Assembly: GCA_044892505.1 (NCBI GenBank)
Contig: CM097883.1
Coordinates: forward strand, 421,352,001 to 421,416,000
DNA: 64,000 nucleotides
DNA from: Schmidtea nova
Lineage: Eukaryota
Reading direction: 5' to 3'
Part shown: positions 338 through 24,040 of the stretch, one piece after another
How positions within the stretch are numbered: position 1 is the first letter of the stretch
Layout: every line of letters starts with the position of its first letter
Notes under the pieces: generated by a model
What the model was told of the DNA's origin: nothing
Database searches by the model: none
What the model saw: the letters and a program-made list of their open reading frames with translations, nothing else
Position numbers and translations under genes: made by a program

Positions 338-500
338 CCAACATAAACGCTTTCCCCCGCTGATACCCATGATGTATCCCTAACTACTCATCAAATTGGT
401 ACTGTATCAAGGCAGGTGAGCAACCTTGCGGCTTCTATTCCCTTGTTTATTCACGGGTCCACCACTACCGTTAGAAGGTTTGCGTGCTTTTATTCCGGTC
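338..500 (-). ncRNA. Structured element B, copy B0 (subfamily b), 3' of X1
   Basis: Minus strand reads ACC-TTCTAAC-GGT...GACCCGT...CAAGG..AGCC-GCAA-GGTT-GCTCAC..CCTTG, then GATAC-AGTACCAA-[TGATG/CATCA]-G-GTATC, then TTTATGT. Same motif order as the other five copies. Confidence 0.6.
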
Positions 501-660
501 ACTCACATTTATTTAAATTCATTAGGTCTAGGGTATATTTACTTCCTTTATATCCTTTGGCCGAAAATGAATTAGTTTTATTCAATCATTCCATTTACTT
601 AAATACACATTCATTCCTCATACATTCGTAATACCACAATTGAACTATGATACATTTATT

Positions 661-1202
661 TCAATCTAACAACACTGCGGGATTAATAACAGCTAGTAAG
701 TTTTTTTCGGTTAGACCGCTCAGGAGATCTACTTCGATCCCGATTCGTTCAGCATATTCCCTTCTTTCTCGCCTTTTAGCGCCTAATCGATTCCTGCGCT
801 TAGGCCCTTTAGATCCTTCGGTTTTCGGAGTACTTTCTGGGGTGTCTGGATTCGAGTTCAAATTCGTCTCCACCTGTACGCCCATCGAGACGCTGTTTTA
901 TTTTACCCATCGATCAAAGGCACTGGTTCGTATGAGCGGCCGTAATTGCTGTTCAATGAACTCCTTAGTAGAAGCTCGCAGATAATTACTTACAGCGGCT
1001 GTCTCTCGCGCTTGCTCTTCCGCTATTATTTCGGCACGATATCTGGCCTGTTGTATGACCTTTACTCGTTCCGGGTGGAACCAAGTTGTTTTTATCGCTT
1101 GATACTCAGTGTCCAGCTGCCTTAATCGACCTCAAGGGCCTTGACTCGTTGCCGCGATTCCTTTGCCTCTGCTTTGTAGTCGTGGTTCTTTGTTGCACTC
1201 AT
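661..1202 (-). pseudogene. Family X copy 1: coiled-coil protein with basic tail (frameshift plus stop)
   Basis: Manual translation: MSATKNHDYK.../LRQLDTEYQAIKTTWFHPERVK...KEFIEQQLRPLIRTSAFDRWVK*...KRRNRLGAKRRERRE...; homologous to intact ORF 21298-21732. Confidence 0.75.
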
Positions 1203-1446
1203 CTAAAAGAAGAAAATGGGGAAATTAGGGTGTTCTATACATTCATGGTACTCAACCCACTCTCTCCTTATATGATTCATCATAGTCATCAGCATTTAGC
1301 CACTACGATCTAACCCCAAAGTCATCATTCATCCTAACGGCATCACACTGTTTTATGACACTCATTCCCTCATCAACACAGTTAGCAAGGCAGTTCTTTA
1401 TTAATAATCAAACATAGTTATTTTAACATGATAATGTTGTGGAGGC

Positions 1447-1843
1447 TCACAGAAATTCTACTAGCTCCTGATCATAGCTTCGATCGGGTAGTCCTTTGCC
1501 GTCGGTTTGATAAATTTCGGGGCATGGATCCCAGCAGAGCCCATCATGGAAGGTAAACGATGTCTACGTTGTCGTCTAATCAGGTATATATCCTTTCATT
1601 TGGTTTTGCTGCAACTGATTAATCGATGCCGATAGTCACTGTGTTTTCCCGACAAATTTTCTCTGTCGAAACTTTGCTGAATAAAATCTCGAACTCGTCC
1701 ATTCATGTGCATTCTTCCCCCCTTAACAGATTTTAGAAAACTTGGTGCCTCGCCGCATCAACCCTCACATGAAAATGTGTTGCGCTGAGAGGCCGAGTAT
1801 CCCGTCAGATCGAATGACCTTCGGGACAAACCTTATGCATCAT
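1447..1843 (-). pseudogene. Degraded ORF region downstream of the 2.0 kb TATA/CCAAT promoter
   Basis: GC-richer segment with broken frames. A GTATGT donor at 1884 occupies the same position as the 5'UTR intron donors of the Z genes. Product unknown. Confidence 0.3.
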
Positions 1844-2009
1844 GAAGGTTAATAACAATCATAACAAAAATCGAACTAACATACCTTTTACTTCGCACAA
1901 TATACTGGTACAATGATTTCTATTCACACGTTGATTATTCAGTGAAAATCTAACTCTTAACAAGAATGATTCCTGGTAAGAATTGACTGTTGGTAAAAAA
2001 CTGACTCCC

Positions 2010-2065
2010 TTACTGATTTTGACTGCTGCTTATATACTATTTTGGCCTCGCCTTCTGGCCAATCA
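2010..2065 (-). promoter_or_regulatory. Compact Pol II-type promoter (CCAAT, TATATAAG, TCAGT)
   Basis: CCAATCAG at 2059, minus-strand TATATAAG at about 2029-2036 and TCAGT at about 2012-2016. Same layout at 24.0 and 26.35 kb. Confidence 0.6.
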
Positions 2066-2949
2066 GAATTCAGCATGGTTGTCTATTTGTTAGTCATTTA
2101 TTTTTAAATGTCGTGATTTTTTTCTATTAGACCGGTGAGTTTGATGGTTATTCTTTTATTTATGCTTTAGTGGTTTTATTTTATTTTTGATCTCTCTGTA
2201 CTGCCTGAGTGGTCCACCTCCGCATTTATTTTGTACAGAATTTCATTTTCGCTTCGGTAATTTTATTGCACTTTTTTGCTATTCACCCTTCTTTCTATTT
2301 CAGGCCTCGGTGGTTTTCAATTACTCAATGGTAATTTATTATCTTTTGTGCTTATTTTATTTCTGACATTTTTGATAGCTCCTATTCTCGCCTGATTGAT
2401 TTTGCTTGCTCATCGCACAGTTCTCTCATCTCGGTCTAGCGGTAAGTTCTGTATTGTTATTAATATTTTATTGTTATGTTGTTTCTTTCAGGTTTCGTCA
2501 TGCTTTACTGATTGTTTGTCTATCGCTGATGTTTGGTGATTTATTTTATTTAATTTTATTCTTATTTTTCTGTTTAATTTGTACATTTTTTAGATTGTTT
2601 GCGATTCGCCGGGCCCAACCGTTGTCACAAATCGCGGCCAATGATGAATCAAATGCCCAACAATGTGAATCCAAATAAACGGCGTTCTTTCCACCAGGAA
2701 TTCAATAAACCGAGCACAATCGACATAATTACTGCAATATAAGTGAAAATAAGTGAATATAAATTCTATTATAAACATTATTATCTTTTTATTTTTTTAT
2801 AAAAGCAAATTTTATTTAAAAATTATTATACTTCCTATTTTACAGATATAAACTTTACATAAAAAATTATTAACTATTTCATTCTATAGGTGTAAATCAT
2901 ATCATGAAAATTACCTTTACTTAATGTAATGTGAACCTAAATTATTCAA

Positions 2950-3224
2950 CACTACCCCACGAAAATCTCACACTTTCATTTAACTACATTTGAACTACAA
3001 ATCCAAATGCTTCACTTCTAACATTTTATTCATTAGCATCCCAAATAAAATTATCCATTCGCTACCACCCATAACCTCTAACCCACTATCCATAAGATAA
3101 TCAAAATCCTAAAATAATTGATTTCATTATTTTCAAGAAAAAATAAAATTTTCATTAATATCCAATGCATTCATAACACATTCATCCCAGCACAACATCA
3201 CCCAATCAACCATATCACTCATAA
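2950..3224 (-). repeat. Module A copy 1 (G-poor plus strand; probable decayed Cys-rich ORF on minus)
   Basis: Shares the TACCCC(T)CACGA(T/A)ATC(A/T)CA anchor (2958) with 9256, 13813 and 17481, and the CACTCATAA end with copy 2. Confidence 0.45.
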
Positions 3225-3470
3225 TCATGTACAATCACTATTGATATCAAACAAAGAATTAACTTGCATTATTTGTCAAAGAAAATAAAACGTGTATATA
3301 ACCCAGAAATATTCCCTGCATTGAGACTTGAATCTTATAAACCACTGTGTGTAAATATATTTGCTTTCGAGAAAATAGCAGTTCTCGGATTAAAAACTCT
3401 CAATTTTGATTGTTTGGTAAATAAAATAGTTTATAATGTAAAATATTTAATTGGTTTATCAACACTATAA
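3225..3470 (+). pseudogene. TBP-fold (TATA-binding-protein-like) C-terminal fragment
   Basis: TITIDIKQRINLHYLSKKIKRVYNPEIFPALRLESYKPLCVNIFAFEKIAVLGLK aligns by eye to the TBP repeat ...IRLEGL...YEPELFPGLIYRM..P.IVLLIFVSGKVVLTGAK. Too divergent to be host TBP. Confidence 0.65.
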
Positions 3471-3634
3471 ATAAAAAAAACTTTTTCTTTACCAATTATT
3501 TTACAATGCCAAAATTTTCAGAAACAGGTAAATATGTGCTCCATTATTTTATTATTATTTAATTTTTAACCTTTAGAGTTAAAGTTCTTGTTAATGAAAT
3601 TATTGAGATTTATCCAGAAATTAAAGATGAAATC

Positions 3635-3820
3635 TTGAATTGTGCTCCAGATACCGCCGCTGTAAAAGTCTATCAATTTACTGGAATCAATATAGAACGC
3701 ATTATATTCCATCATAGATTTCTAATATGTGGAATAAAAAAACAAACTAATATACTCAAGAAAATAATTTTCCCGTACAAATGTAAAAAATATATTGATT
3801 ACAAACGAAAAAAACTGTAA
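3635..3820 (+). other. ORF fragment co-oriented with the TBP-like fragment, unknown product
   Basis: NCAPDTAAVKVYQFTGINIERIIFHHRFLICGIKK has protein-like composition, but the family could not be verified. Confidence 0.3.
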
Positions 3821-4372
3821 ATATCTACGTTAACGAACTTTACAAATATCCTGAATACTCATGTTTTGATTAACCTAGTTATTATTTTAAAATTATTGTC
3901 TTTATATAATGTTGTAAAAATAGATTATTAACATGAAATTTCTTAAAAAGTTATAGAGGTTTTGTTAAGAAATAAATTACAAGTTGAATCTTGTAAAAAT
4001 ATGTTGAAAAATAATTTAAGATGTGAAAAAAATCAAAGTTAAGTAAGCATAAAATTCAAAAATCATTATTTTCATAAAAGTTTAAACAGAATCTTGTAGA
4101 GAATTAAATTGTGAATAAAATGAGCTATATAATTTTTGAAAATACTATCCAACAGTTGCAGAAAACTTGAAATGTTGTGTCAAAATAAAAATCAATAATG
4201 TAACCCAAATTAAGATATCATATTATAGAGAATAAGTTTTCAAGATTGATGTAATAAATTGTTAAAAAATAGTTGAGCACTTATGAAAAAGTTGAAGTGC
4301 AGCTTGTGCTGGGTTCATGGAAGTTTTGAGAAAAATTAATACGTACTGTGCTAGGGATACCCTATCCATGAT

Positions 4373-4570
4373 CATACATAAAAATACACACTAATTCACT
4401 CGAGCACCCTTAACTACTCCCTGTATAGTTACGTTGGAAATGCGCAAGGTGTATGAAAAATGATTGGCAGATGAGATCAATTGCTGGAACTACTCCCTAT
4501 ATATTTTGACGGGTTCCCGCTGCCGTTTGTAGGTCTTACGCTATTTAACTCCTTCAATAATTACCCTCTT
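4373..4570 (-). ncRNA. Structured element B, degraded copy B'' (subfamily b), 3' of X2
   Basis: Minus strand: AGACC-TACAAAC-GGC..GAACCCGT..GGAGTAGTTC..GATCTCATCTGC..CCAA-CGTAAC..GTTAAG-G-GTG..TTTTTATGT. Colinear with 20890-21075. Confidence 0.5.
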
Positions 4571-4718
4571 AAATCAATAAACACTATTTTTCAAATGTGA
4601 TTTAATTTATTTATTAACTCCTTAAAACGAAAATTTAAAACAACAATGTATGACATCAACAATTCGTTTATTTTATAAAAAATTCGTGAAAATCTTCGTC
4701 GAGCGGTAGGATCTCGGC

Positions 4719-5257
4719 TTACAAATCTATTTCATTTAACTCTGCTATTTGATCAATTTGCGCCCGTAACTGTTTGTCAAATAACTTCTTTTGTCTTCGG
4801 CGCTTGGAGCCGATTCGTTTTCTTTTCTTGGTGCAGTTGACGATCGGTACGACTTTCGTTGATGGCGCTGGAGTTTCCATTATGACTGGCTCTAAACCCT
4901 CAACGTCTGTTCATACCGAACACGCGGGTTTCTTCTCCTTCACCCAGTTTTGATACTTAATGGGCCGGATCTGGGTTCGGAGTCGATGAAGGAGGTTGTT
5001 ACCGAGTGGAGGCACTTTCGTAGTTCAATTTTGGTGGCCTTCCACTCAACCCGGTATTTGTCCGCTGTTCGTTGAGCCCGTTCTGTGCGAGCCATCTATC
5101 TTTCATTCTGACTGGCGCAAACCAGCTCTTTCGCAGGTATTGTATCTGTGCTTCAGTCTTAGACAGTTGGACTTTTATTTGCTCGATTTCCTTCTCGACT
5201 ACGTCTGATTCTCCAAGCTTTATCCAGTGCGATCTGGTGGTTTGGTTCTTGGTTCAT
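4719..5257 (-). pseudogene. Family X copy 2 (several frameshifts)
   Basis: ...KSWFAPVRMK.../EWKATKIELRKCLHSVTTSFID/RTQIRPIKYQNWVKE...KKRKRIGSKRRRQKKLFDKQLRAQIDQIAELNEIDL*; clear match to 21298-21732. Confidence 0.75.
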
Positions 5258-5780
5258 ACTATATAAACGAATTTATTCCGATTAATTGGATAGCTACTGT
5301 AATTTCTATTATATGGTAGAGAAAATGTATTTTACTTAAAATAAATACGCTGTAAACAGCAAAACAACGAAAGAAAATCAATTAGTACAACAATTTATTA
5401 GATTTTATCATATCACACAGTTCACATTGTTAGTTCCTTTTCCCTTTTCCGAATACATGAGCGACGTGAAGGCCCGTGTTATTATGTTAATAAATTGGTT
5501 ATTTGAGTTGGTTAATTTTGACTACTACTAATTGAGTGCTTGGGGATTTGTAAGTGCCCAAGAGAGTCTCCCAAAAATTATTGTGGGGACAATTCGGGTG
5601 CCTGTGTGTGTGTAATGTAGGATTTACTGTGATTAACAAAGATAATTTTAAATAACGAATTAACAAATATCGAACAAATAACTATAATTTCGGAAAACAA
5701 AAATGAAACTCACGTAGTACAGAGATGATGTTTGATTTTCTTGTGGTATTCTTATAAATCGACTTAGTATATGTTTTCTT

Positions 5781-6073
5781 GTATCCGGTATAACGATATT
5801 TTATAGAAAAGTATTTGGAAGGAAAAAGATGTTGAAGTTGACTTTGGTTGAGTTTCCTTTTATCTGGATATTATAACGATATTTTATAGAAAAGTATTTG
5901 GTAGGAAAATAGATGTTGAAATTGACTTTGGACGAGTTTCCTTTTATCCGGATATTATAACGATATTTTATAGAAAAGTATTTGGTAGGAAAATGGATGT
6001 TGGAATTGACTTTGCGTGAGTTTCCTTTTATCCGGATATTATAACGATATTTTATAGAAAAATATTTGGTAGG
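5781..6073. repeat. Tandem repeat, 83-84 bp unit, about 3.5 copies
   Basis: TAACGATATTTTATAGAAAA recurs at 5791, 5874, 5958 and 6042. Confidence 0.95.
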
Positions 6074-6285
6074 ACAAGAATTTTCTTTAGTAATTTTCTT
6101 TTACAATTTACCACAATTCACATTTAACAACGTTCAATTAATTTTTTAATCAATTTTACTTATTTGTGATTTGGCTATAGTAAGCCTAATTCAAATTTTG
6201 AATTAAAATTACTAAAATATAATAATTAATAATAATAATACAAAAATGAAATTGCCCTTATTATTCAGGGATGGGGGGAAATCCA

Positions 6286-6319
<34 letters not shown>

Positions 6320-6334
6320 CTCATAATAAAAACA

Positions 6335-6820
6335 CTAATAATAAAAACAAATCCTTATACTTAACTGTTGGGTTCGACGGATCTCCTCTAGTGACCAATT
6401 TGACATTCTCTCCTCATGTGTCTTTCCCAGAGTGCGCGGCGATGTAAATAGATGTAATCCCAATCCTGTGAGTTCACCTTGAAGGATGTGTCCCCAATAT
6501 ATTACTTGTGACGGTTCTTGATCTGGGCCATTTATTATTATGATCAATCGACCCAACTTCGGAGAATAACATTGGTTAGCCGCGATCGGCCATCCAGGAC
6601 CTTTACGGTATAGTATCTGGCCTCTGCCGGTTTTCCAAATGGGAAACGGACATTTTTCTCCAAAGGCTCTCCTCCACTCGAACATTTGCTCATTGATTGT
6701 CCGTAAGATCGGGGTTGGTACATCCTTTAGCTCTCGCTCAGCCCTGATCTTTGAAACGTCGGTTGGCGTTGATAACCCTCTCTGGGAGGTCACGAGTTTC
6801 TCTATTGAGGTTTGCTCCAT
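6335..6820 (-). CDS. Family Y protein copy 1 (161 aa, unknown function)
   Basis: Open ORF with TAG acceptor 10 nt upstream of the ATG. PFPIWKTGRGQILYRKGPGWPI...VIYWGHI aligns with PFSLFRDGPSDIIWHGSREWPI...VYYQGEI of 22177-22680. Confidence 0.7.
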   Translation of the reverse strand: MEQTSIEKLVTSQRGLSTPTDVSKIRAERELKDVPTPILRTINEQMFEWRRAFGEKCPFPIWKTGRGQILYRKGPGWPIAANQCYSPKLGRLIIIINGPDQEPSQVIYWGHILQGELTGLGLHLFTSPRTLGKTHEERMSNWSLEEIRRTQQLSIRICFYY

Positions 6821-7959
6821 TTGTTTTCGGCTAAAAGGGTGTAGATTACCTACGCAATAGATTATCGCTAATTACAACGAATAATAAGTTGTACCAAAGG
6901 AAAAGGAGAAAAATGTACAGATAACTTTTGTTAAAAACTGTCGCTATTTACATCGATCAGGGCTGCTAAAATAGGTTGATATCAGCTGTCACTATCTACA
7001 GTGATCAGTACACTCCATGTGCCTTAATATGTATTATATCATAATATCTCTGAATCCTTTCTATTACGACTATTCCCTGCGCGTGGAATGAAAGCAGTCT
7101 TGTTTACACTATAATTTCGGCTTTACCCTAGAAAAACCTTACCCTTGAAAATTGGCGAAATAACTTGGCTTATGTACCTCTTTTTTGTGAACATCTCCAT
7201 GGCTTTTTAAACTATAGCAGCCTTGTTCTGCAATCATTGATGTAACTTTTATATCTGATTTTTTTCTGACCCACATATTGCTAAAATTGGTTAAATCAAC
7301 CAAAAAAAATAAATAGTTTAGTAAACACTGTCGCCATGATATAGCGATCAGGCTATGTAATTTAATCTAATGATATCGAACCTTTGGAGCATTTGTTGAT
7401 TTTGGTTTGTGCATTTAATAGAAATCTCATATAGACGAAATCCAGAGGACGGATGAGTTGAGAAGCCTGCTGGATACTGATAATTTGTGGTTCGATTAAT
7501 ATGAAATCCAACGAAGAAAATCATGTAAATCTTTTTTGTAATACAGATTAGGACATTGATCGAATGAAATTCAATAGAAATCCCAGTGATTTGATAGGCA
7601 TGGGGGAATGTGTTCATAGATAATAAATTCCAATTCCTGGTTAACAATTTGTTTTTCTTCTTTGATAGGAATTTGGAGGAAACGATGTGCTGGGTTTTGT
7701 CTTGAAAATTCCAACTCACCCGAGGTTGTTCGAGAACAAATGTGAAACCTGAATAATAAAAACAGAATAAAATTCGAGTCAACAATAATAACTTACTATG
7801 CAGAAAATAAAGAGAGTGAAAAATCACATTTTCAGTGAAAATTAAACTTAAAATCAATAATGTATAGACAACTGGCATGATAGGCATCAGCCAATGAGAA
7901 CCCAGTATTTTTGATTCTCCTAGAAAATTAAAGTATAAAATTAGTGTAAAATGTGATAT

Positions 7960-8782
7960 ATTTTATTTATCAGATATATTTGAAAAACTTAATTTATTAA
8001 ACAAACAGTTACAAGGAAAAAATATGTAATCTCATAACGTGTAAAAAAGTAATTTATGCTTTTTTGGGAAAGCTGAATCTTTCCATAACAATTATTGGTC
8101 GTCGTGAGTTAGCGCAATTTTCATCATTGGTCACAATTTCAAATGAAATACAAGATAATGATTTGGAAATATATATATTAATCATTTGAAACAGCTTCGT
8201 GAGGATATGCGAGTTAGATTTATTGATATTATTAATTTAAATATTCCAGATTGGGTGAATTATCCATTTAGTGTGAATGCAGCTGATATCAATATCGAAC
8301 TGCAAGAAAGTCTTGTGACTTGCAAAGTGATATGAATGCACAAGTTAGATTTAAATTAAATAAAGATAATTTCTGTATCTGCAATGAAATAGTCAGTACA
8401 TTTCCACGGTTATGGGAGAAAGCTAGGTTATATTTCATTGCATTTCCCACTTCTCATTTGGTTGAATCTGGATTTAGTCGAGTTATGCATGTCCTCTCAA
8501 AAGCACGTAACCGTCTTGATGTTGTGCAAAGAGGCGATCTGCGTATGTCGCTAACAACATTGAAGCCCGAAATTAATAAACTCGCTAAATTGCACCAAGC
8601 ACAAGGATCACACTAAATTTCTTTACATAATTTGTTGAAAAAATATGTATGTTTTATATATGTACAAGTTTATTAAAAATATATTTTAGAATTTTTAAAT
8701 AAAGTTTTGTTTTTAATGCCTACTATTTTCGAACAAATATTGAAGGGGGGAGGCACAGACCAAAAAAGGTTGAGAAACGCTG
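7960..8782 (+). mobile_element. hAT (Charlie/Buster-type) transposon 3' fragment
   Basis: Translates YLSDIFEKLNLLNKQLQG...FIAFPTSHLVESGFSRV..LSKARNRLDVVQRGDLR..LT and ends in the TIR AAAAGGTTGAGAAACGCTG. Confidence 0.9.
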
Positions 8783-9244
8783 ATTTAGATCATGACCGAA
8801 GATGTGAATAATTAGTGATTTATAAAAATTGAACCTCGTAGAATTATGAAATTGTAAAATTACAAAGATTTGTATTTTAAAGAATTTTTAAATTCGGTTA
8901 TAAAATTAAAAATTTACTTTTATGGATACTATGTTAGGTAAAAATTGTAATACAAAAAGTATAAATTAAAATTTTTCCTAGAAATTATAAGTTAAAAATA
9001 TATTATTATATTAAAATTTTATTTTATAAAATTCTAAATTTGAAATTTTGTAGAAAAATTTACATCCTTAAAATATAAAAATTCAAATTCAAAAATTTTA
9101 TTATCTTATTATAAAAATTTGAAATTTTATTATTACATAACCTTTGTAAAATTTTAAATTTTAAATTTTGTAAAAGGAATTGTAAAATTACTATTAATAT
9201 TTTACTTCTAAAAATATTTTATATATAAATATATATTATTTTAT

Positions 9245-9775
9245 AAAATACCCCTCACGATATCACAAAATCATAATACATCCATATTTGCAAATCACAA
9301 CATCCATTTCATTCATTAGTAACATTCATATATAATACTAAAATAAAAATCCATTCATTTCTCAACACACGCACTACATGGTTTCACTTATTAACAACTA
9401 TTAACATCACACATCCATAAGATACACACCCAAAAAATTCATTTAATAACATGTGTCTGCATCATACATCCAGAATTTGCACGACCATTAAAATCCATCA
9501 CTGAATTACTTATTTCACCAACACACCATCACATACATTCACAACAATAGGATATTCATTCCAAATTTACAATAGTATACATACATACAAACTGACAACC
9601 ACTGCATCTTCCATCATATATTGTCACCATTCATTTCAAAACCACCTTATGTCAAAATTCAACACTTACGTTCCCTATCACCACATTGCCACCATAAATT
9701 CACCAATTTAAACATTGCAGACAATCTACATCCATGTTCAACCACATCATTCACATTATATCCCCTCACTCATAA
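9245..9775 (-). repeat. Module A copy 2 (decayed Cys-rich ORF-like)
   Basis: Minus-strand frames give MSEGYNVNDVVEHGC..., GRCSGCQFVC, CCEC, KPCSAC, FCDIVRGIL* interrupted by stops. Confidence 0.5.
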
Positions 9776-11422
9776 AAAGTCGGGTATTTTATTTATAAAG
9801 TAGGAATATAAAATTAACAACTACAAAATACAATATTTTATTATTTATCTTTATTATAAATAAAAATTAGGTAAAAATAAAATCGGTAACAACAAACAAA
9901 TATTTATTTTTATTATTAAGTAAATCAAAATTTTAGTTAAAAAATAAAAATCGATGACCACAAAAATCAATATTTATTTTACTATTTATTTTTATCATTT
10001 CAGATAAACGCAAAAAGCAACATTTATTTTAATATTATAAAATAAAACTTCAGTTAAAATAAAATAAAATAAATAACACAAAATACAATACCAATTTTAT
10101 TATTTAATGATAGAGCGAGCAAAAATTTTCACGTAAAAATAAAATCCATAACCACGAAGCAGAAATAGTCTAGGATAACGATAATAAAAACGACTAAAAC
10201 TGATGATCCATATATTTTGGAAATATTTCAAACAGATAGGATATCACAGTGTCGCTAGAAAATGTTTCCGCCGAATGACGTTTGAGAAAACTCCATATCG
10301 AAGCGTGAGTATCAATTGATTGACATTTTGAATCTGAAATGAGAAAAAATTGAAATTTCCAACGGAGTTGGTGTTTGCATCCGAGATTTGGGATTGCAGA
10401 ATTGAGACAAATGATAAGATTCCTAGAAGTCCACTATGATAATGAGTGATGAGGAAAAAAATGAAAATTGTCTTCAATTGTCGTTAAATTTGGAAAATTC
10501 GTCCCGTAGATTTGGAAAGTCACTGTAAATAAAACACTATTATGTTAGATAAAATAAAACAACCAATCAGGCAGGATGAAGGTTGGATCTGATGATTTTA
10601 AACAACCTTAATATATACAGAATTTAACAAAAATCATCTTCCTACAAATTAAATTTTTTTTTATGTCAAGCAAATTACAGAAAATTTTAATCTAAAATAA
10701 AAAGAAAAAACAAAACAAAACTTAATTAACCCCAACGAAGAAAATTGAATGACTATAAATTATAGGAAGTTTTACTAAATTAAATTTGTTACCAAGGCCT
10801 CGACGAGAATCTAAAGGTTAAAATTATTAAATTGGTGGTAAAGTTAAAACCAAATTTAACCTAGCAAGATAGACATTAGGTATAGGGGATAAGTAGAATT
10901 TAGTTAAATTTACTGACACTAAAATATACAAATTTAAACAATCTGGAAAATAATAAAGGTTTAGTCAAAACAATAGAAATCAAATACCCCGAATATATAT
11001 GTTGATGAAAGATTATTCGATCGCTGAATTGAGTTACGATGGTATGTTTGAGCATGAGCTTGGGAATATACTAGAAATGCGAATATGCTTGTTTTCTTTT
11101 GATAATGTAATGGGTAGCAACTGATGGAAATAATTGATTTTATTACGCTTTAGATTTTGATCGGAAAATCGAGAATTCAGTGACAGTAAGGTACGAAAAC
11201 ATCTCGGAAAACCCAGAGAACTTTAATACTCCAGGTACAAATGATTTTATTGATTCTATTCTGCTTGTTCTTGTCCTATGTGCATCGTAAATGGGTCATT
11301 ACATAAATTATTAATGTTTTGATGTTAAAAAAATGTATTATTTTGATGCGATAATATACTTATCGATAAAGATTATTTATTTTGAAATTCCGATTAAAAT
11401 ATTGTTGATAGATTGTTGAAGA

Positions 11423-11710
11423 AAGGACAAAATGGGCATTAAACCTTCTATCGGTAGTCCTTGGACCCAGGAGATAATCGGTCAATCATAGTTTCGAATT
11501 TTCGACGCTCACTGATTGCGAATACCCAACCATTTGTTGCAAACCAACGTTACATTGTAACGGGCAACAAGATGATTAATCTAATGTTTTATGTGTTGAG
11601 TTGTTGATGTGAGCCATAGCAACGTCAAGGTCATATTGACGATCAATAACCCATCATGTTGTTGATGGGAGCTATAACAACGTCAAGGTCATGTTGACGG
11701 TCAACAACCC
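11423..11710 (+). ncRNA. Structured element B copy B1 (subfamily a), with terminal hairpin duplicated
   Basis: ACC-TTCTATC-GGT; CAATCA/TGATTG; TTGTTGC-AAACCAA-CGTTAC-ATT-GTAACG-G-GCAACAA; two copies of GTTGTTGAT-bulge-CGTCAA/TTGACG-RTCAAYAAC. Confidence 0.7.
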
Positions 11711-12661
11711 AATTTTCGATTTTTATCTTAAAAATTCTTAAACATTTGAAAGAAAATTGTTTTAGTTAAAAATTTAACAAATTTAACTTAATTAGAAAAA
11801 TCTTGATTCAAATTAAAATTTTGGATTTAAAATAAATTATTTAAAATTTTATTAAAATTTTATGCAAAAATATTTATTTGGTTTTGCATAAAATTGTTAA
11901 ATTTAATTTTGAAAGAATCGAATCAATGGAAACAACACGTAGAACATTGTATAAATAACGCCATCAAAATAGAAATTATTAGAATTGGCTTGAAAGTTTT
12001 GAGAAATTTATAAAAATTGTTAGAGAACCCACTGGGGAAAACCGAAAAAGGCGAACCCCTCAAAAAGTTCAAGAAACAATCAATCAGTTTCCGACTTGCA
12101 GAATCCGGAGTTTTTGCGAAAATTTCAAGACACATGTGAGGATCTCAATTTTTTTATTATGCAGGCTAGCAAGTCATGCTCTCGTTACCCTGCCGTAGGT
12201 ATTTTACTTGACCTTTCGATTATATTATTGGTAATACGTTATTGTACGATTTAATATGTTATTCATAATTTTTTTTGGAAATTATAATTTTTCGATTTAA
12301 ATTTTAATTTTGTCACATTTTTCTCAGAAACTAACATCATTGAATTGTTATTCATTTATTGTTTTATTTGTACATCTATTTTTTCTCATTAAAACCACTT
12401 CCATACCTTCTAAAGTCAGTCCGGCCTTGAGCTTTACTGATGAAATAGCCTAAGTGGATCACTGTTCGGTTACTTGCTGGCCAGCCCGCTCTAGGTGAGG
12501 CCCACACATTCATGATCGCCTCATCCCATCCATCGTTTTAGGGGAGCAGTGGCTTGACCAAGAACAAGGATTTCTCAAATTAATTTAACTTCTAGAATCC
12601 TATTACATTTTTACCGAAGTGCGATACGGTATTCGAAGACGCAAATGAATATTTTATTTAT

Positions 12662-12662
12662 A

Positions 12663-12713
<51 letters not shown>
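12662..12713. repeat. (TA)n microsatellite
   Basis: Direct reading. Confidence 0.95.
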
Positions 12714-12720
<7 letters not shown>

Positions 12721-13310
12721 TACATAACTCTTATATCTACATAAAAATTTGGACATAATAAAAATAAATTGAAAATATGCATTCATCTCGTATATTGCCT
12801 TCGCAAAATGAATGTCGTCTTTATCTCGCTATAAAGAAATCGCAAATAAGTCGAATGTTTTTAAAGCTCTTAAATAACAACTCAATAAATAATAGAAATG
12901 TCTATATTGTAATATACTTTCAGATCATATTCGATATTATTCAATCGAACTTCACTTTAAGTCACAAACATGAATAATAAATACTTCTGAAAATGGTATC
13001 TAAAGATTTTTGTATTCAAAAATTCCAAAAGAAAGGTCTTGAAATTTTATATATATTTTTTTGATTGTCAAAAAATTCGAATATGGTTGAAAAAATAAAA
13101 ATTTATTTTATAATATTATATTATGCAAAAATTTAGATTAAATTATTAGAATATAAAAATTACAAATTGGAAATTTTATTTTTATATTAGAATATAAAAA
13201 TTATAAATTATAAATCATATTATTATATAAATTTTATAAAATTCTAAATTTAAAATTATGTAGGAAAAATTATAAATAGTATTATTATTATTTCAATCCT
13301 AAAATTATTA

Positions 13311-13311
<1 letters not shown>

Positions 13312-13385
<74 letters not shown>

Positions 13386-13707
13386 TGAGAAGAATACCTT
13401 TACCACTGACGACAATACAAACAATTTCAAGTGACAATAGAACACCTCACTGATTCCGATTGTTCGAAATCAAAGAGAAGTTTATCCAATATTGCAATGC
13501 CGGAATCCAAATCCGATGAAGATCACATTCACTGCCAGTGACAATACAAGCAATTTCGAGTGACAATTGAGTCGAGAAAACCCTGAATATCATCCAATTG
13601 ATCCAGATATTTCAGACTCTTCTGCCCTAGAATATTGTCAGTATGGGATGCTCCATGTTGAGCTATGTCCCATTGGAAAATTATCATATATTATTGAAAT
13701 AAAATTT

Positions 13708-13787
<80 letters not shown>
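13312..13787. repeat. Two (TA)n tracts enclosing a 325-bp non-repetitive insert
   Basis: (TA)n at about 13312-13382 and 13708-13787. The insert has an internal direct repeat (GACAATACAA.CAATTTC.AGTGACAAT) near 13410 and 13540. Confidence 0.85.
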
Positions 13788-13790
<3 letters not shown>

Positions 13791-13802
13791 AATAATTTTA
13801 TT

Positions 13803-14300
13803 AAATACCCTTCACGATATCACAAAATAATTATACATTCATATTTACAAATGAATACATCCATACCATTCATTAACACCATTCACATTTAATACCACAC
13901 ACAAAAATTTATTCATCTACAAATACACATATCACATCATTTCATGCATTAACACCCATCAGCATCACGCATCCAAAAAATCGACACAAGAAATTCACTC
14001 ATTCACATTCATCATTGAACTACCCATCTCACTCAACAACATCAACTACGTTCACATTACTACACTGAAAATTCACGATTTAATCTATAAAAATATAAAT
14101 AACCATCAAATTTGCAAATCACAACATCAATTGATCCAACTTGTTGGCGACCTAATTATCATTGTGTTTCTAACTAACAACCCCTATATTATTCAAAATC
14201 ACACTGGAAATTCATAGTATTCAACAACTCAAATCACCTTTTAAGCATCCTTCATAACTTGCACCTATTGACACCCTTACAATAAATCTTATTATTCAGT
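13803..14300 (-). repeat. Module A copy 3
   Basis: AAATACCCTTCACGATATCACAAAAT anchor at 13803-13828 and similar following sequence to copy 2. Right boundary approximate. Confidence 0.5.
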
Positions 14301-15778
14301 TAACTCAAGTATTTAATTCAAAAAGATCTCATCTAATTAATTTTCAAGAAAATATCACCAATTCAGTTAATAAAGTTAGACTGAAATATACTTTGAATCC
14401 CGTAGAACTTACTATTTAACACCCACCCAATGTTGATTAAAAGCTATTGTATACATATAAAATGTAATTCACTATTATGCAATAGCCCAACTCCAATAAT
14501 ATTCACTCTAAACACTAAGACTCAGAATAGATGAAAATTTTTTTTAAAATAAAATCATTTAAAATTTAATTTTAATAATTTCACAATTACCAACATTTAA
14601 AAAAAACAAGAAAACAATTCTTTCAAAACAGCAACTTTTATATAATTAAATCATATATGATACCCCAACGAGGGACTATCTCCAACTAATTCCTGAATTA
14701 CCAGCCACAGTCATGGAATAAGTACATATCACCGGCGAGAAAGTAAAATTAGACCAGATATGTTAGACGGAATCCGACGGGGACAAAATTCTGCATAGAT
14801 CAAAATCTCGGTAGATCGCCGGTCATCAAAAAAATCGGAGTGCAAAAGCTCTGAGTCGGTGCTGGTTGCGATTGTAATGATTATTTCCAAGCGAGTCGAG
14901 AGTCTACAGATGCTGAGGTGCGATTATTTTTCATTGGTTACCGTTGTAATGATACAATTGACTGACTTGTTGTATAGATTAGTGAATGGAAGTTTGTTTT
15001 CTAAAATTCTAATTTACTAAAATTTAATCAATATAAGAGAATTCTAAATAAAAATTACTTGATAAAGATTGTCCACCGGATAATATTCATGTTAATGAAT
15101 AGATTTTTTTCTAAACCAGGTTAAAATATATACAAATTCAAACTACTAAAATTGTCAAATATCGGATGAAATTCTTGTAAAGATAAGAAATCAATAATTA
15201 TAATACGTTAGATTGAATGCTTACCATATAAAGTTTATATTATAAACTGACCAATAGTAGCAATTTAAATTCGGTAAATCGCTTATATAGTTGAATTTTA
15301 AAGTTGAATTTTTCCGTTTCAGAGGGTAAGGAAACGTTGGAAAATTTAATCCCATAGTATAAAAACTTGACATCATCGTAGTTTTCATAAATGGAAACCC
15401 TAAGGCCTAACAAAACCAAGTTTCCCCTTCATATTAATTATAACCGTTGCCTGTGATCAAGGCCTCGGCGATAATTTGAAATATAATTTTCGTTTTTGGT
15501 TAATTTAATTTTGACATAAATTTAATGGGATTACCCGTATTAATTCGACGTTAAATGGACGTAAATGAATTCTTTCTAAATTTAACTCTATTGAATTTTG
15601 AATTAAAATAATGATATAAATAAATACCGAGTATACAACAGGTTTGAGTATAATTCTGTAACTGAAATAAAAATCTGGACGATCTTTGCGTTTTTGAGAT
15701 GGTATAGTGCACGAAAATTGGATGGAATAGTTTGGCGATTAAAATCTTATTGAATGTCTATAGATGAATTGTTGGATA

Positions 15779-16010
15779 AGGGACAAAATGGGCATCAAAC
15801 CTTTTATCGGTAGCCCTTGAACCCAAGAGATGTTCAGTCAATCATAGTTTCAAATTTTTCGACGCTCACTGATTGCAAATGTCCACCCATTCGTTGCATT
15901 ACCAACGTTACATTGTAACGGGCAACATAATGGTTAAAGTAATGTTTTATGTGTTGAGTTGTTGATGGGAGCCATAACAACGTCAAGGTCATATTGACGG
16001 TTAACAACCC
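15779..16010 (+). ncRNA. Structured element B copy B2 (subfamily a)
   Basis: Aligns over about 230 nt with B1 and B3, and the stems are retained largely through G-U-type changes. Confidence 0.7.
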
Positions 16011-17473
16011 ATCAGAATCAATAAAAAGATCCAGATCTACGATTCAATCCAAGTCTTCGAGACCTTGGATGATCTGTACAGAAACATTTGTGTAGTAAGA
16101 CATGATTAATTTGCATACAATTTTGATAACGTAGTAGTATAATTTTTTATATTTATGCATTATTATCAGTGATTTTTGTGTACAAGTGCTTTTACGATGT
16201 AAGAAGTGAAGAACCAATTTGATTGGTTAATGGTGAAGGATAAAGGGAATAGAAAAATAGGTTGTAGAAAATTGTAAGGGGCATACAAGGGAACTTCATC
16301 TTAACCATAGCTTAAAAAATTAAATTGATAAAACTTTAATCTTAGTTATTTTAGTAAGAAATGGAGCAAATTCAATAGACAAGGGAAACATACGACAGCT
16401 AAGCAAAACTGCAAAGTGTTGAGCAAAAACTGCAATTTGTTTTAATACAGCGATAACCCCATAGGTAGAGAACGCGCAAGATTCCATTTTTAACCCTAGC
16501 ATCCATTAAAAATCCAACAGTTAAGCGGAAAACACCAAAAGGTGAAGTGGAATCAAAACACATCAACCGGTAGAGTACGCGCTAGCTGTAAATTTGCAAG
16601 TCTTTTCATTGAAATCTCGAGAAAAATTAAAAGTAGAATGTTTGAAAGTTAGAATAGGCGGAAAACCCATTGAAAATGCCCATAAAAAACAGAATTTTTT
16701 TCATAAACCTTCAGTACAGAAAAAATCGACTCGTACTCACCTTCACCTTCACACTCTCAACAACGATCCTCTTATGCGGAAAACGCAAGAAAAATGGAAG
16801 CTAATGCCGAAAAGAAAATTGTTCGAAATAATGCTCAAAGCTAGTATAATGATCACGAAATGAAACGAATTGCGAAACAAGTATTGATTTGATTTTACTC
16901 GATGTCGAAAATATTCTTGAGGAGTTTATAACTTATTTCATTTTATTTTTATTCAGTATATAAAACCTTTTAGATCAAATTCTTATTTGGATCGAAAAAT
17001 TTGTAGATAAAAATTTGTTATGTGGATTTCATTTTGATAAAAATAAAATTTACTTTTTATTATAATACAAAAATTTTAAAATAAAAAGCTGTAAACCAAA
17101 GATCTTCCTAATATTGTTATTCTATAAAATATTTTGTCATTTTATAAAAATTCAAAAGAATTTATAAATCAAGAATTGTATCCAAACCCAGAAAAATTAT
17201 AAATCGAAATTTTATTATCACATTAATAATTTTTATCATTTTATAAAAACCCAAATTCGAAATCTTATAGAAAAATAAAAAAATATAAGAAAAATATAAA
17301 AATTTAAATTCAAAAACCTATGTTATAAAAATTATAAATATTATCATTTATTTAATTTTCATAAAATTATAAATTAGATTAAAAAATTAGTATTATTATA
17401 TTTATTTAAAAATTATTATTATTATTTTAATTTTAAAAAATATTTTTTATAATTTATATATAGTATATTATAA

Positions 17474-18020
17474 CTACCCCCACGATATCTCAAAATCATA
17501 AGGCACCTCTAATTGCAAAAAATTACACCCTTTTCATTCAATAGCATCATCCATACTAATACACAAGCAACCTCTATTTAAAACACTATACACACCTACA
17601 CGGTATCATTCAACAGCATTTCAACAATCATACACAAGCAAACCATACCAAAAATTCCACACAGACATGCTAGTTAGAATTGTACGTCTAACCACACGCA
17701 CAAGTACTCCATTGTTTTCAGTCATCCATACCAAAAATCGCACGCAACCACGATAACAATAAAATCAGCCAAACCTATAGTAATATCACACTCAGTCGTT
17801 CGATCTCACCTCACTCATCAATAAATCATTTGTTTTACATCCCACTTACTGATCAGCACTCAAACACATACGATAGCCAAACAGATATCCATAATAGACC
17901 TAACAGGATATGGATGCTTACAAACTTGCACTCCGAACGTCCATGTCATCCACATTCGAATCACCATTCAAAAATTTAAGGCAAACACATTGTTATAAAT
18001 CGCCAAACTTATACACAAAT
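17474..18020 (-). repeat. Module A copy 4
   Basis: TACCCCCACGATATCTCAAAATC anchor. The minus frame has KCC*MIPCRCV*CF, matching the Cys pattern of copy 2. Right boundary approximate. Confidence 0.5.
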
Positions 18021-19353
18021 CTAATCCCCAGGAGGATTACGAGAGAAAAAGCAAAATAAAAAGGAGTAAAATCATTAATTAACAAATGATACAAGAATAA
18101 ACTAAACATGAGAAAAATTATTAAACTTAAATTAATTAAGGTAAACTAAATGTACTACACATAAAATTGGTTGTTTTTTTGTTCTCGTAATTAGATCCAA
18201 TCCGCTTCATCAGTTGAATATTTGAACAGAGATGTAGTCCAAAAATGTAATCCTAATTCCCTAACGAGGGTTAAATCATATTGTGGTAAGGGAAAAAGGA
18301 GAAATTCCATTTTATTCATAAAAACATAAGATAGGCGGCTATAGAGAAGATCTGTTTGAAAAACCACGAAATTACATTATTGAACAGAGACTGAATTGAA
18401 ATTGATTAGAAATTGGATCGAAATTGAATAGAAATTGAAATTGAAATTGAAATTCTATCACCACTTCTGTGGATTGCACTGCGAATTCTTTTCAATTTTT
18501 TATTTTTTGAAATTTTCGGATAATAAATTTCGAGATCTGCAAGTGTTTGTTTTTGTGGTGGAAGATCTTCACTCTGGTAATTCCCCTCGACTAGTTAACT
18601 GGATATTGAGACCTAAATCCTGAAAATGTTATTACCTAAACGAAATAGAATAAATTACTAGTATGTTCGTTGGTTTGGGAGAAATCCGCTTCCTAAAAAT
18701 ACCTATCAAAAATCAATAATTATAATATAAACTTTAAATCGTGATAATAAAAATTATCCAATAAAAATCATGGAATATTTGCTTACTCATTTATATAGTT
18801 TTCTTCTTTTAAGGGGGAACAGCCTTGTTTTCAGGGGTATCCGAACTAGATTTGAATTTCCTAAAATAAAATTTAATTTAGAATCTGAAAATATAGGAAA
18901 TATCTAAAATTAATAGGTAATAATTAGATTAAATTTACTCAATTTCTAGACAGTTTATATTGATACCGTTGCTAATGCCTCGGCAAATTTTGAAAAATTA
19001 AATAAATTAAAGTTTAGTAAAATTATAATTATATTTCTGCACGATAGACATTAGGGATGAGGAATAAGTGAAATATCGTTAAATTTATTGACACAGAAAT
19101 ACACAAATTAAAAAAAATCTTGAAACTAATAATGAAGTTTAGTTAAAATCAATAAAAATCAAATACTTTGAATAGATGTGTTGATAAAAAGGTATTCCCT
19201 CTTGATTTCCCGAATTGAGGCTCGATGGGCATACCCATGGAAGATTCGTGGTCAAATATGTGTTTATTAAATTTTCATAAATGATGATAGATGTTGAAAT
19301 TGTTGTGCATTAACTATGCTCAACATGTACTAAATGATTGCATACTTTTAGAA

Positions 19354-19925
19354 ATGAACCCAATACAACAGCTCGAGGAGATCCGTGCGTTATTACTCGA
19401 CAACGCGAGACATAACAAGAAGGTCGATGCCCGTTTGGCCGAACTAGAAGCCAAAGGCGCATCCAACTCTGACGCACTCCAGCTGATGACTGGCCGAATG
19501 GAAAAATTCCGGGCCCGCTGTCGCGAAATGGAAGCGACATGGTCCCATAAAGAGACGATGGATCGGCTGAAGAAACAGAACCAGCTGCTAATGCAACAGG
19601 CCGCCGAGGACGCAATGAGATTGCGGCGTGTCGGTTTGCAATGCGAGAACAGGAACTCGTAAACCAAAAACTACAGGTAGATAGCGGCATCATCGCAGCC
19701 ATACTACCGAGATCTCAACCTACCCCTCAAGAACTGTTCCCGGTGAGGGTGGAGGAGGAAATCACAGCAGCAGCGGCTCCGACCAAGCCAAAACGATGGA
19801 GGCCCAGTAAAGGAACAAGGGCCAGAAATAAGCGCCGTCAAGAAGCCCGAGTGCTAGGCCAATTGAGGGTCGAGGCCTCGAAAATCGGTGATTTAACCAT
19901 TGACCTGACTAATGCACGTTTTTGA
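19354..19925 (+). pseudogene. Family X copy 3 (one frameshift near 19650)
   Basis: MNPIQQLEEIRALL...MEATWSHKETMDRLKK... then ...KPKRWRPSKGTRARNKRRQEARVLGQLRVEASKIGDLTIDL. TTTTAG acceptor 2 nt before the ATG. The most divergent X copy. Confidence 0.65.
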
Positions 19926-20128
19926 GTGAACTTGTAATAAATGTCGTTATTTTTATGCTGTAATTATAAGTTTTCAATTAGTTTTCTTTTGTGTGATTGA
20001 ATGAAGATAAAGAAAAAAATAAAAGCACTCAAATAAATTAATTGATTAATAAATAAATCACAGTTTAGCGAAAATATTCAAATGAAAATCTCGTATAAAA
20101 CATCTACAGTGATAGAGCGGTTAATTTA

Positions 20129-20361
20129 GGGGGGACAAAAATGGGCACTAAACCTTCTATCGGTAGCCCTTGGACCCAGGAGATATTCGGTCAATCATAG
20201 TTTCGTATTGACGACGCTCACTGATTGCGAATACCCACCCACTTGTTACAGTACCAACGTTACATAGTGACGGGTAACAAGATGGTAGTTTTAATGTTTT
20301 ATGTGTTGAGTTGTTGATGAGAGCCATAGTAACGTCAAGGTCATATTGACGATCAACAACC
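20129..20361 (+). ncRNA. Structured element B copy B3 (subfamily a), 3' of X3
   Basis: Compensatory changes versus B1: TTGTTAC/GTAACAA against TTGTTGC/GCAACAA, and TCGT-ATTG-ACGA against TCGA-ATTT-TCGA. Confidence 0.7.
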
Positions 20362-20425
20362 CACCAAAAGGAATAATGCTGGGGAAAAATTTCAAGTAAC
20401 CGAATATATTCAAATTCCAAATTAT

Positions 20426-20722
20426 TTGAGAATAGATGACCGAAAAATGAAAATCAAGATGCTTAAACTACATCGAAATATGGGGATGAATTTAACCGAT
20501 AAAGTTAAGATATCCATCAAAGAACAATATTACCTTTACAACATCAAAGGGACAGTGGAAATAATCGATGGGAATCAACCGTGGTTGGAATTAAAGAAAT
20601 TATTGTCTTGGAAAATTCAAAAGGAAATTATGGCAAAATTCATACGTGCAGCGAATGAAGAAGCTCTCATTGTTTTGGAAACGAGAACAAAAAATGAGCA
20701 AAATGAGAGACCATGTATGTAG
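20426..20722 (+). other. 98-codon ORF between convergent B elements, unknown
   Basis: ORF track only. Plausible helical composition, but no homologue was recognised in the window. Confidence 0.3.
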
Positions 20723-20889
20723 CCAACAGAGAGCCATGATGCAACATTGAAGCAAATCTCAGAGGAAATGGTGAAACGAAAATTGTCTTTTGTTAGGAGT
20801 GTTGGTGTGTTGTGTTTAAAATTCAAACTCTGAATCAGCTTTCTGACTTTCTCTTCCTGACCTTGACTTCCTCGCTCTCTAGGGTCCAA

Positions 20890-21075
20890 CACACACATAA
20901 AAACTTAACTGTTCATACACCCGTGAATTACCCTAATCGTTCACGTTGGAATTGTGTATAAGAGCCGATCGCAAGCCAGCAGGTGAGCTCCTTCACAAGA
21001 ACTACTCCTGACTTGTCGCATCGTTCGGGTTCTAGCTTGACCGATAGAAGGTCTCGTTATAACTCTCCTCACCCT
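20890..21075 (-). ncRNA. Structured element B copy B' (subfamily b), 3' of X4
   Basis: Minus strand: GACC-TTCTATC-GGTC..GAACCCGA..CAAGTCAG..TAGTTC..GAGCTCAC..CTGGCTTG-CGAT..ATACAC-AATTCCAA-CGTGAA..TTCACG-G-GTGTAT..TTTTTATGTGT. Confidence 0.7.
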
Positions 21076-21297
21076 GTATTTAGGTCTCTCTTTTTGGGTG
21101 TTCGCTTCCTATTTCATATATCCCCATTCAGCCTATTACTTTATTATTTCCTACTAATTACCCTTTTGCTTACGGTTTTATGAGTCAATGAAACTGGAGT
21201 TTATTTTTCGTTATAACTTTATTTAATTCAATTCTCAACCAACAAACAATAACACATTTTTATTTAAATACATATATTTATTCACATAACATTACAA

Positions 21298-23754: not shown

Positions 23755-23959
23755 TATCTATATTCAAAATAGGTAAAACGAAACGTGAATTATGGTTTAT
23801 AAAATTATATTTGATATAACAGGTTACTTACATTTCCTATTCCGATTTTGCACAATACTTCAGAAATTTCTTCCTCGAGTGTTGATGAAGTCTTTCGAAA
23901 AGATAATGGTGTGATTAACAGTGAAACTTTGATGTTACTGATAGTGTAAAATGACATTA

Positions 23960-24040
23960 AAGTGACTGACCTGAGGGCTTCCTTATATAGTAAAATCGAC
24001 GCTCAGGCAGCCAATCAGAATCGAGTAACCTTTTTATTGG
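23960..24040 (-). promoter_or_regulatory. TATA plus paired CCAAT/ATTGG promoter of Z1
   Basis: Minus-strand CTATATAAG at 23982-23990, CCAAT at 24011 and ATTGG at 24036. GCTCAGGCAGCCAATCA is identical at 26351. Confidence 0.65.

Follow-up and report, generated by a model that had tools for sequence, protein, structure and literature searches.

A repeated element and its neighbouring reading frames

The window analyzed here is a 64 kb stretch of contig CM097883.1 from Schmidtea nova (assembly GCA_044892505.1, positions 421,352,001 to 421,416,000 of the forward strand), in which coordinates are counted from the first letter. It harbors exactly six copies of an element of about 160-290 nt, designated B, all of which lie within the first 21 kb. 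The copies are named B0, B'', B1, B2, B3 and B', and they fall into type I (B1, B2 and B3) and type II (B0, B'' and B'). An original prediction, made from the letters of this DNA, had counted six copies and quoted the strings that form their stems; every one of these strings is present where it had been placed, and the count is borne out. The regular expression ACC-N7-GG-N5-12-RACCC matches six sites in total on both strands of the window, at 479 (-), 4534 (-), 11443 (+), 15799 (+), 20152 (+) and 21052 (-), with TTTATGT located 132-152 nt beyond each of them, and three other motif combinations return the same six sites and otherwise only scattered partial matches. A covariance model built from B1-B3 only, and run over the whole window with its filters off, ranks B' (E 3e-8), B0 (0.02) and B'' (0.4) directly behind the copies used to build it; its further matches (best E 0.45) are taken as noise, and such a scan finds nothing resembling B in the other 43 kb. 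A hidden Markov model (HMM) of five copies scores these at E 1e-33 to 1e-51. The sixth copy, B'', near 4534, which had been left unnamed in the prediction, was located by tblastx and by reading of the sequence. For a pattern of the bases that do not vary among the three most divergent copies, 0.00 chance matches are expected in shuffled sequence.

The core of B consists of two irregular hairpins, HP2 and HP3. Among the type I copies, the conserved block of B1 spans 11429-11714 (+), with its core at 11441-11596, HP2 at 11483-11518, HP3 at 11534-11570, UUUAUGU at 11588-11594 and two HP3-like units of 54 nt at 11600-11653 and 11658-11711. B2 (15785-16014, +; core 15797-15954, HP2 15839-15875, HP3 15891-15928) and B3 (20138-20366, +; core 20150-20306, HP2 20192-20227, HP3 20243-20280, UUUAUGU 20298-20304) have a single 54-nt unit each, at 15958-16011 and 20310-20363, respectively. 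The type II copies are all encoded on the opposite strand. B0 (323-481, -) has its core at 339-481, HP2 at 408-445, HP3 at about 360-410, UUUAUGU at 341-347 and a CCCUAAC string at 323-329. B' (20858-21054, -) has its core at 20893-21054, HP2 at 20972-21015, HP3 at 20914-20960, UUUAUGU at 20895-20901, ACCCUAG at 20879-20885 and a GAGAGC...GUCAAGGUCA tail that reaches to about 20858. B'' (4353-4536, -) is partly degenerate, with HP2 at 4463-4500, HP3 at 4384-4454 (alternatively 4405-4451), UUUAUGU at 4376-4382 and UCCCU at 4353-4357.

Four of the six copies (B0, B'', B3 and B') lie on the same strand as, and 182-246 nt downstream of the stop of, an open reading frame (ORF) termed ORFb. The sole intact ORFb, of 144 aa, belongs to the B' unit (21298-21732, -), its stop preceding B' by 246 nt. 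The B3 unit has a copy with one frameshift (19291-19925, +; 19291-19662 plus 19641-19925) that stops 227 nt before B3. The remnant of the B0 unit (664-1131, -) is interrupted in frame by a stop at 898-900, and that of the B'' unit (4719-5250, -) by several frameshifts; they end 182 nt before B0 and 185 nt before B'', respectively. These copies are homologous at the protein level only (24% identity), with tblastn scores within the window of E 2e-6 between the B0 remnant and the ORFb of B', and of 0.005 for the B'' remnant. They have in common a C-terminal pattern of TPxP, followed by a cluster of Lys and Arg residues and then a short hydrophobic helix. A single-sequence AlphaFold2 model of the intact ORFb places helices at residues 3-20 and 23-73, followed by a disordered linker and by a third helix, at 110-137, that covers the basic motif, with a mean predicted local distance difference test score (pLDDT) of 71.

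A further reading frame, ORFa, is found upstream of ORFb and in the same frame in the B' unit (22177-22680, -; 167 aa), and again in the B'' unit (6335-6820, -; 161 aa; 27% identity between the two, E 4e-7). The AlphaFold2 model of ORFa is uninformative (pLDDT 40). No homologue of ORFa was found in a word-indexed search of a protein collection, nor of ORFb in an exhaustive search of 1.8 billion representatives. Neither has a significant Pfam match (all E values at or above 0.003, and every score short of the curated cutoff), and a search of the PDB yielded no match for ORFa and only a marginal one for ORFb (E 0.72). ORFb is predicted to constitute a small, fast-evolving family of orphan reading frames. 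Two minor features lie among these genes. The 510-nt gap between the convergent B3 and B' copies contains a 98-aa ORF (20426-20722, +) with no Pfam match, and an 84-nt tandem repeat of about 3.8 copies (5756-6077; 86-91% identity) separates ORFa from the ORFb remnant of the B'' unit.

Within blocks of the same orientation the copies are spaced by 4055, 4356 and 4353 nt, and the B1, B2 and B3 units share further collinear segments of 70-76% identity. The copies therefore belong to duplicated units of about 4 kb, arranged in tandem and inverted, and are not dispersed transposon insertions; inspection of the flanks of the type I blocks revealed no direct repeats or target-site duplications. The B1-B3 blocks are 83-90% identical, versus 70-76% or nothing alignable elsewhere in the collinear units. 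The pairwise identity of the cores is 83-89% within B1-B3 and 46-57% between the four lineages, and the DNA around the cores is unalignable between lineages. By these comparisons, B evolves more slowly than its flanks.

Fold and covariation of the element

The closing stem of HP2 is formed by CAAUCA/UGAUUG in B1-B3, CAAGUCAG/CUGGCUUG in B', CAAGG/CCUUG in B0, and a weaker AUAGG/CCAAU in B''. Above it lies an asymmetric loop in which a U is opposite CAC (CAU in B''), to which the type II copies add an AG/CU step and a G-G mismatch, and then an upper stem whose first pairs are always A-U and G-C. The tetraloop that caps HP2 is AUUU or AUUG in type I, GUGA in B' and GCAA in both B0 and B'', so that three lineages have a GNRA tetraloop. 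In HP3, the outer stem varies among UUGUUGC/GCAACAA, UUGUUAC/GUAACAA, AUACAC/GUGUAU and GAUAC/GUAUC, the 5' bulge ends in CCAA, and the inner stem varies among CGUUAC/GUAACG, CGUUAC/GUGACG, CGUGAA/UUCACG, UGAUG/CAUCA and UAACUAU/GUAGUUA. The single G that had been described opposite the CCAA bulge is present in B1-B3 and B', but B0 and B'' follow this arrangement only loosely. The two hairpins are framed by invariant single-stranded motifs, namely ACCUUCUAUCGGU, RACCC, GGG and UUUAUGU. The weakest part of the structural model is the ACC-N7-GGU element: as a hairpin, it has only 2-4 invariant base pairs and a pairing probability of 0.03-0.23 (0.73 in B'), and is poorly supported.

Beyond UUUAUGU, the type I copies continue through the one (B2, B3) or two (B1) 54-nt hairpins to a sharp end at AACAACCCA. 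These hairpins have an outer stem of UUGUUGAU/AUCAACAA, a 5' bulge and an inner stem of CGUCAA/UUGACG, and look like duplicates of HP3. RNAalifold indicates that a terminal stem, AUGGG/CCCAU, can close the entire type I block, and in type I it prefers CUUCU/AGGAG together with GGU/ACC to the ACC-N7-GGU hairpin; B2 has one compensatory change in the CUUCU/AGGAG region (C to U with G to A). A side observation is that TCAAGGTCA is invariant in all four 54-nt units (11625-11633, 11683-11691, 15983-15991 and 20335-20343) and recurs past B' at about 20859-20867 (-). As DNA, this string is the extended nuclear-receptor half-site, which may be a coincidence.

In the type II copies, HP3 has a large loop containing UUAGGG or AGGGA, which can pair with CCCUA(A/G) located 10-19 nt past UUUAUGU (7, 7 and 5 bp in the three copies; shuffle p 0.02, 0.08 and 0.09). 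A second crossing pairing is possible between RACCC(G) and (C)GGGU at the 3' base of HP3 (5, 8 and 4 bp; shuffle p 0.08, 0.004 and 0.46). These crossing pairings are suggestive only, as the conserved GGG/CCC motifs that form them show next to no covariation, and the loop pseudoknot is impossible in type I, in which HP3 ends in a triloop. A helix enclosing both HP2 and HP3 can form in B1 and not in B3, and is thus not conserved. The CUCAC of the HP2 loop may pair with a G-N-GAG motif past UUUAUGU. B0 has two telomere-like strings, CCCUAAC (323-329, -) and GUUAGGG in the HP3 loop (378-384, -), and the two are perfectly complementary; their counterpart in B' is UUAGGGU with ACCCUAG.

The stems had been predicted to covary, and they do so well above shuffled, slid and cross-lineage controls. 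For HP2, on a structure-blind MAFFT alignment, 11 of the 16 pairs are altered on both sides, 80.6% of the positions are paired as compared to 27-47% when the partner strand is slid, and none of 500 shuffles, a control that ignores the relatedness of the copies, reaches the observed covariation. HP3 was counted by a pairing script and on the model-fitted alignment, because MAFFT failed to align it structurally. On that alignment, 93.9% of the cells of the whole core are paired, as compared to 29-39% in slid controls, and both sides have changed in 13 pairs, of which six belong to the HP3 outer stem. When the 5' strands are combined with their own 3' strands, 124 of 140 pairs (89%) are canonical, versus 258 of 504 (51%) when they are combined with those of other lineages. 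The closest comparison is between B1 and B3, which are 89% identical: five of their approximately 17 differences fall at paired positions, and these make up two full compensatory pairs (TCGA/TCGA to TCGT/ACGA and TTGTTGC/GCAACAA to TTGTTAC/GTAACAA) and one A to G change that yields a U-G pair, with none breaking a pair.

These changes are also polarized. Read from the opposite strand, only 115 of the 140 pairs are canonical, because there are about a dozen G-U pairs and about three A-C mismatches on the sense strand, and all of the differences between the four 54-nt units are of the G-U type on the strand of the element. This excess of sense-strand G-U pairs makes RNA more likely than DNA, as had been predicted, and favours the view that B acts as an RNA from the strand that carries ORFb. 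B is thus a strand-specific structured RNA module. The base-pair probabilities of HP2 and HP3 are 0.74-0.99 in B1 and B3, and intermediate in B0. B2 has three substitutions that break pairs, and B'' has mismatches and an insertion in HP3, so that both look like decaying copies. As the differences at paired positions between B1 and B3 are compensatory or leave pairs unbroken, and as a conserved block stands beside decayed flanks, B is probably under structural constraint, and it is less likely that gene conversion has kept the copies alike.

Known families and candidate functions

In the original prediction B could not be assigned to a known family, and this stood up to the search of Rfam 15 (4227 covariance models). 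At the gathering threshold there were no matches in the whole window; at E<=5 over 1-22000 only an unrelated PrfA match was returned (8671-8792), and at E<=10 over 20100-21100 only sub-threshold matches to small nucleolar RNAs (snoRNAs) that lie outside of B. Self-cleaving ribozymes (hammerhead, HDV-like, twister, twister-sister, hatchet and pistol) gave no Rfam match at permissive thresholds, and by reading of the sequence the CUGAUGA/GAAA catalytic cores are not conserved across the copies. Likewise, H/ACA and C/D snoRNAs and small nuclear RNAs (snRNAs) have no Rfam match and, by reading of the sequence, their boxes are not conserved across the copies; ARAGORN finds no tRNA-like genes in the window and A/B boxes are absent. 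Outside of this genome, the type II pattern has no match in 2.9 million viral contigs, in metagenome contigs or in prokaryote genomes. A stringent pattern likewise has none among the metagenome contigs. A loose pattern has five matches in the viral contigs, all due to chance as judged by HMM, and 79 in prokaryotes, none of which fits the covariance model. A literature text search with the strings of the element yielded unrelated primers only.

Several familiar classes were considered and rejected. A short interspersed element (SINE) insertion does not fit the collinear units and the lack of target-site duplications, and a long terminal repeat (LTR) element does not fit the lack of flanking repeats. 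A coding exon was rejected because the 19-codon ORF common to B1 and B3 is truncated in B2 and most of the changes are non-synonymous. A microRNA precursor would need longer hairpins, and the 5' part is not conserved between lineages as would be required for a spliced-leader RNA. Telomerase RNA was rejected as well, since the CCCUAAC-like motif is found in B0 only and six copies are wrong for that gene.

The explanation to which we lean, though tentatively and with somewhat less than even confidence, is that B is a cis-acting protein-recognition module in the 3' untranslated region (3'-UTR) of the ORFb gene family. In favour of this are the unpaired bases that do not vary and sit on covarying helices, the constant placement of B after the stop, and the polarity of the coding strand. 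A lineage-specific gene family with the order ORFa - ORFb - B would have been amplified locally as tandem and inverted units of about 4 kb. If the gene is transcribed, B would lie in the 3'-UTR, 180-250 nt past the ORFb stop, where its covarying helices could display the invariant loop and bulge bases to a trans-acting protein. Such a partner might be a conserved host factor, or else ORFb itself by way of its Lys/Arg-rich C-terminal helix. The contact might then set the fate of the transcript, by way of its stability, translation, localization or packaging.

A number of observations weigh against this explanation. The ORFb segment is mostly deleted or decayed in the B1 and B2 units, where the B block is nonetheless kept with sharp boundaries; this fits a function independent of the ORFb messenger RNA, or gene conversion. 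ORFb is divergent to a degree that makes it an improbable reader of invariant RNA bases, and a host factor would therefore be needed. Since ORFa and ORFb lack homologues anywhere searched, the gene models themselves are unconfirmed, and downstream poly(A) signals are inconsistent. With regard to the fold, HP2 is certain in B', but HP3 loses to an alternative and is not the thermodynamic favourite; B'' barely folds into the model as judged by base-pair probabilities, and the folding energy of whole copies does not differ significantly from that of shuffled sequence (z -0.06 to -0.73). Finally, the copies are all paralogues of one locus and represent no more than about four independent lineages, and the statistics thus rest on little data.

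As B survives where ORFb is gone, the main rival to a 3'-UTR module is an independent gene for a small non-coding RNA, about 225-290 nt long in type I and arrayed like snRNA or small-RNA clusters, with ORFb a mere neighbour in the ancestral unit. This is possible but the less probable of the two. B1 and B2 are sharply bounded blocks (GGACAAAAUGGGC ... AACAACCCA) with no upstream ORF and nothing conserved outside them, the compensatory changes postdate the duplication, the AUGGG/CCCAU stem closes the entire type I block, and five of the six copies have a T-run within UUUUAUGU, all of which would suit such a gene. However, conservation extends beyond the T-run, the block boundaries and terminal stem are not common to B', B0 and B'', the distance to the ORFb stop is kept in four of six copies, and there is neither a match to a small-RNA family in Rfam, nor an internal box of the tRNA type, nor a conserved upstream or downstream promoter element or 3' box around the type I copies. 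More doubtful is the proposal that B represents an undescribed class of autonomous functional RNA of this animal lineage, compact and possibly double-pseudoknotted, with junction bases that would serve catalysis or a specific ribonucleoprotein; an RNA selected in its own right would explain why B survives where the adjoining ORF has decayed. A catalytic or nuclease-blocking fold, either a new self-cleaving ribozyme or an exoribonuclease-resistant pseudoknot that yields a stable 3'-UTR-derived RNA, is very unlikely. The invariant unpaired bases at the junctions between covarying helices and the two possible crossing pairings of type II are in keeping with it, but the latter depend on GGG/CCC motifs that hardly covary, the type I triloop forbids the loop pseudoknot, no conserved helix encloses HP2 and HP3, and no ribozyme or exoribonuclease-resistant RNA (xrRNA) of Rfam matches even at E<=10.

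Another unlikely reading places B at the 3' terminus of a mobile or virus-derived element, as its recognition module; a non-autonomous retroelement and an endogenized RNA-virus segment would be examples. Replication or reverse transcription machinery would read B, and the copies would be decaying insertions. Such elements typically have a structured 3' end that may include pseudoknots; most copies of ORFb are broken, both reading frames are orphans like many viral and transposon proteins, and transposon debris (mariner, hAT and pogo-like fragments) is abundant in the window. Nevertheless, ORF and Pfam inspection found no ORF longer than ORFa and ORFb near the copies and no reverse transcriptase, integrase, polymerase or other transposon gene adjoining any of them, and no target-site duplications, terminal repeats, poly(A), microsatellite or other short-repeat tails were seen. 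The units, tandem duplicates in collinear order, share other segments as well and are restricted to one 21 kb stretch of the window, and the 2.9 million viral contigs hold no match. The least credible account, for which we see very little prospect, is that B functions at the DNA level, as protein-binding repeats or a cruciform, or is a plain repeat with chance palindromes. Several stems are short, the folding z-scores are not significant, and the 54-nt units contain the half-site-like TCAAGGTCA; against this stand the double compensatory changes in four helices across lineages, the sense-strand G-U pairs that outnumber A-C, a bias that DNA in duplex or cruciform form would not favour, and the fall to about 30-47% pairing in slid controls.

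The nearest analogues of B are functional rather than homologous. The histone mRNA 3' stem-loop is, by analogy, also an RNA structure at a fixed short distance past the stop in a tandem gene family, and has its own dedicated binding protein. B, however, exceeds it tenfold in size, with two irregular hairpins and single-stranded motifs; it has no sequence resemblance to the histone element and no Rfam match, and it is associated with orphan genes. HIV Rev and its response element, and the cis preference of the ORF1p of LINE-1 (a long interspersed element, LINE), might be likened to ORFb and B in that a helical and oligomerizing protein with a basic helix is paired with an irregular, multi-helix RNA with conserved bulges on the same transcript, the oligomerization and the common transcript being putative here. 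Yet there are no retroviral or LINE genes near B, the divergence of ORFb is much more rapid than that of the RNA, whose key bases are invariant, and two copies lack the ORF. Flavivirus-type xrRNAs and pseudoknotted viral 3'-UTR modules share with B the 3'-UTR position (putative for B), a multi-helix fold of about 70-200 nt and, in type II, possible crossing pseudoknots. Unlike flavivirus-type xrRNAs, B has no conserved enclosing P1 or three-way junction, its pseudoknots have weak statistical support and do not occur in type I, and it has neither an Rfam xrRNA match nor viral genes. The 3' tails of stringent-type LINEs and SINEs, such as the stem-loop of eel UnaL2, and the 3'-UTR element of R2 likewise are conserved structured 3' ends in diverged, mostly broken copies, but B lacks a reverse transcriptase, tail repeats and target-site duplications, occurs in collinear tandem units at one locus, and is not matched by the R2 element of Rfam.

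New structured RNA families with real covariation are rare in animal nuclear genomes, and animal 3'-UTR elements are mostly short linear motifs. B, which is absent from Rfam, has a fold of about 160 nt that persists to about 50% identity and outlasts the adjoining coding sequence. If B is a protein-binding 3'-UTR module, it would provide a compact system for the co-evolution of an orphan gene family and an RNA signal; as an autonomous RNA or a ribozyme, it would define a new class. All six copies behind this claim are paralogues at one locus, which makes it a lead and not a result.

Other features of the window

The window is AT-rich (about 30% GC) and of a nuclear type, with (TA)n microsatellites, few long ORFs and seven runs of N, and was taken for the genome of an invertebrate animal, not human. 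Remnants of transposons are scattered through it. A hAT transposase remnant at 8320-8616 (+) has 54-58% identity to FAM200A/SCAND3-like proteins of Artemia, Palaemon and Octopus, and 81% identity to a protein encoded on a 512-nt contig of a wastewater metagenome. A second hAT remnant lies at 45901-47258 (-; Pfam Dimer_Tnp_hAT, 2.6e-6), a mariner transposase remnant at 50307-51257 (+; Pfam Transposase_1, 2e-16), and a pogo/Tc5-like remnant with a weak HTH_Tnp_Tc5 match at 41878-42448 (-). A gag-like ORF at 27006-27320 (-) has no Pfam match. A direct repeat of about 700 nt occurs twice, at 23647-24325 and 25999-26669 (69% identity, 2.35 kb between them), and may represent either an old LTR pair or a segmental duplicate. 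At 39375-40443 (+) there are tandem repeats that look coding and are rich in Ser, Thr, Pro and His (KAPRTPIIKAPSTPITQSSTHSNHS...), their units being 75-92% identical. Long (TA)n microsatellites are found both in spacers of the 4 kb units and in other parts of the window, at 6289-6318, 12660-12715, 13318-13385, 13710-13790, about 48900-49000 and about 56450-56550.

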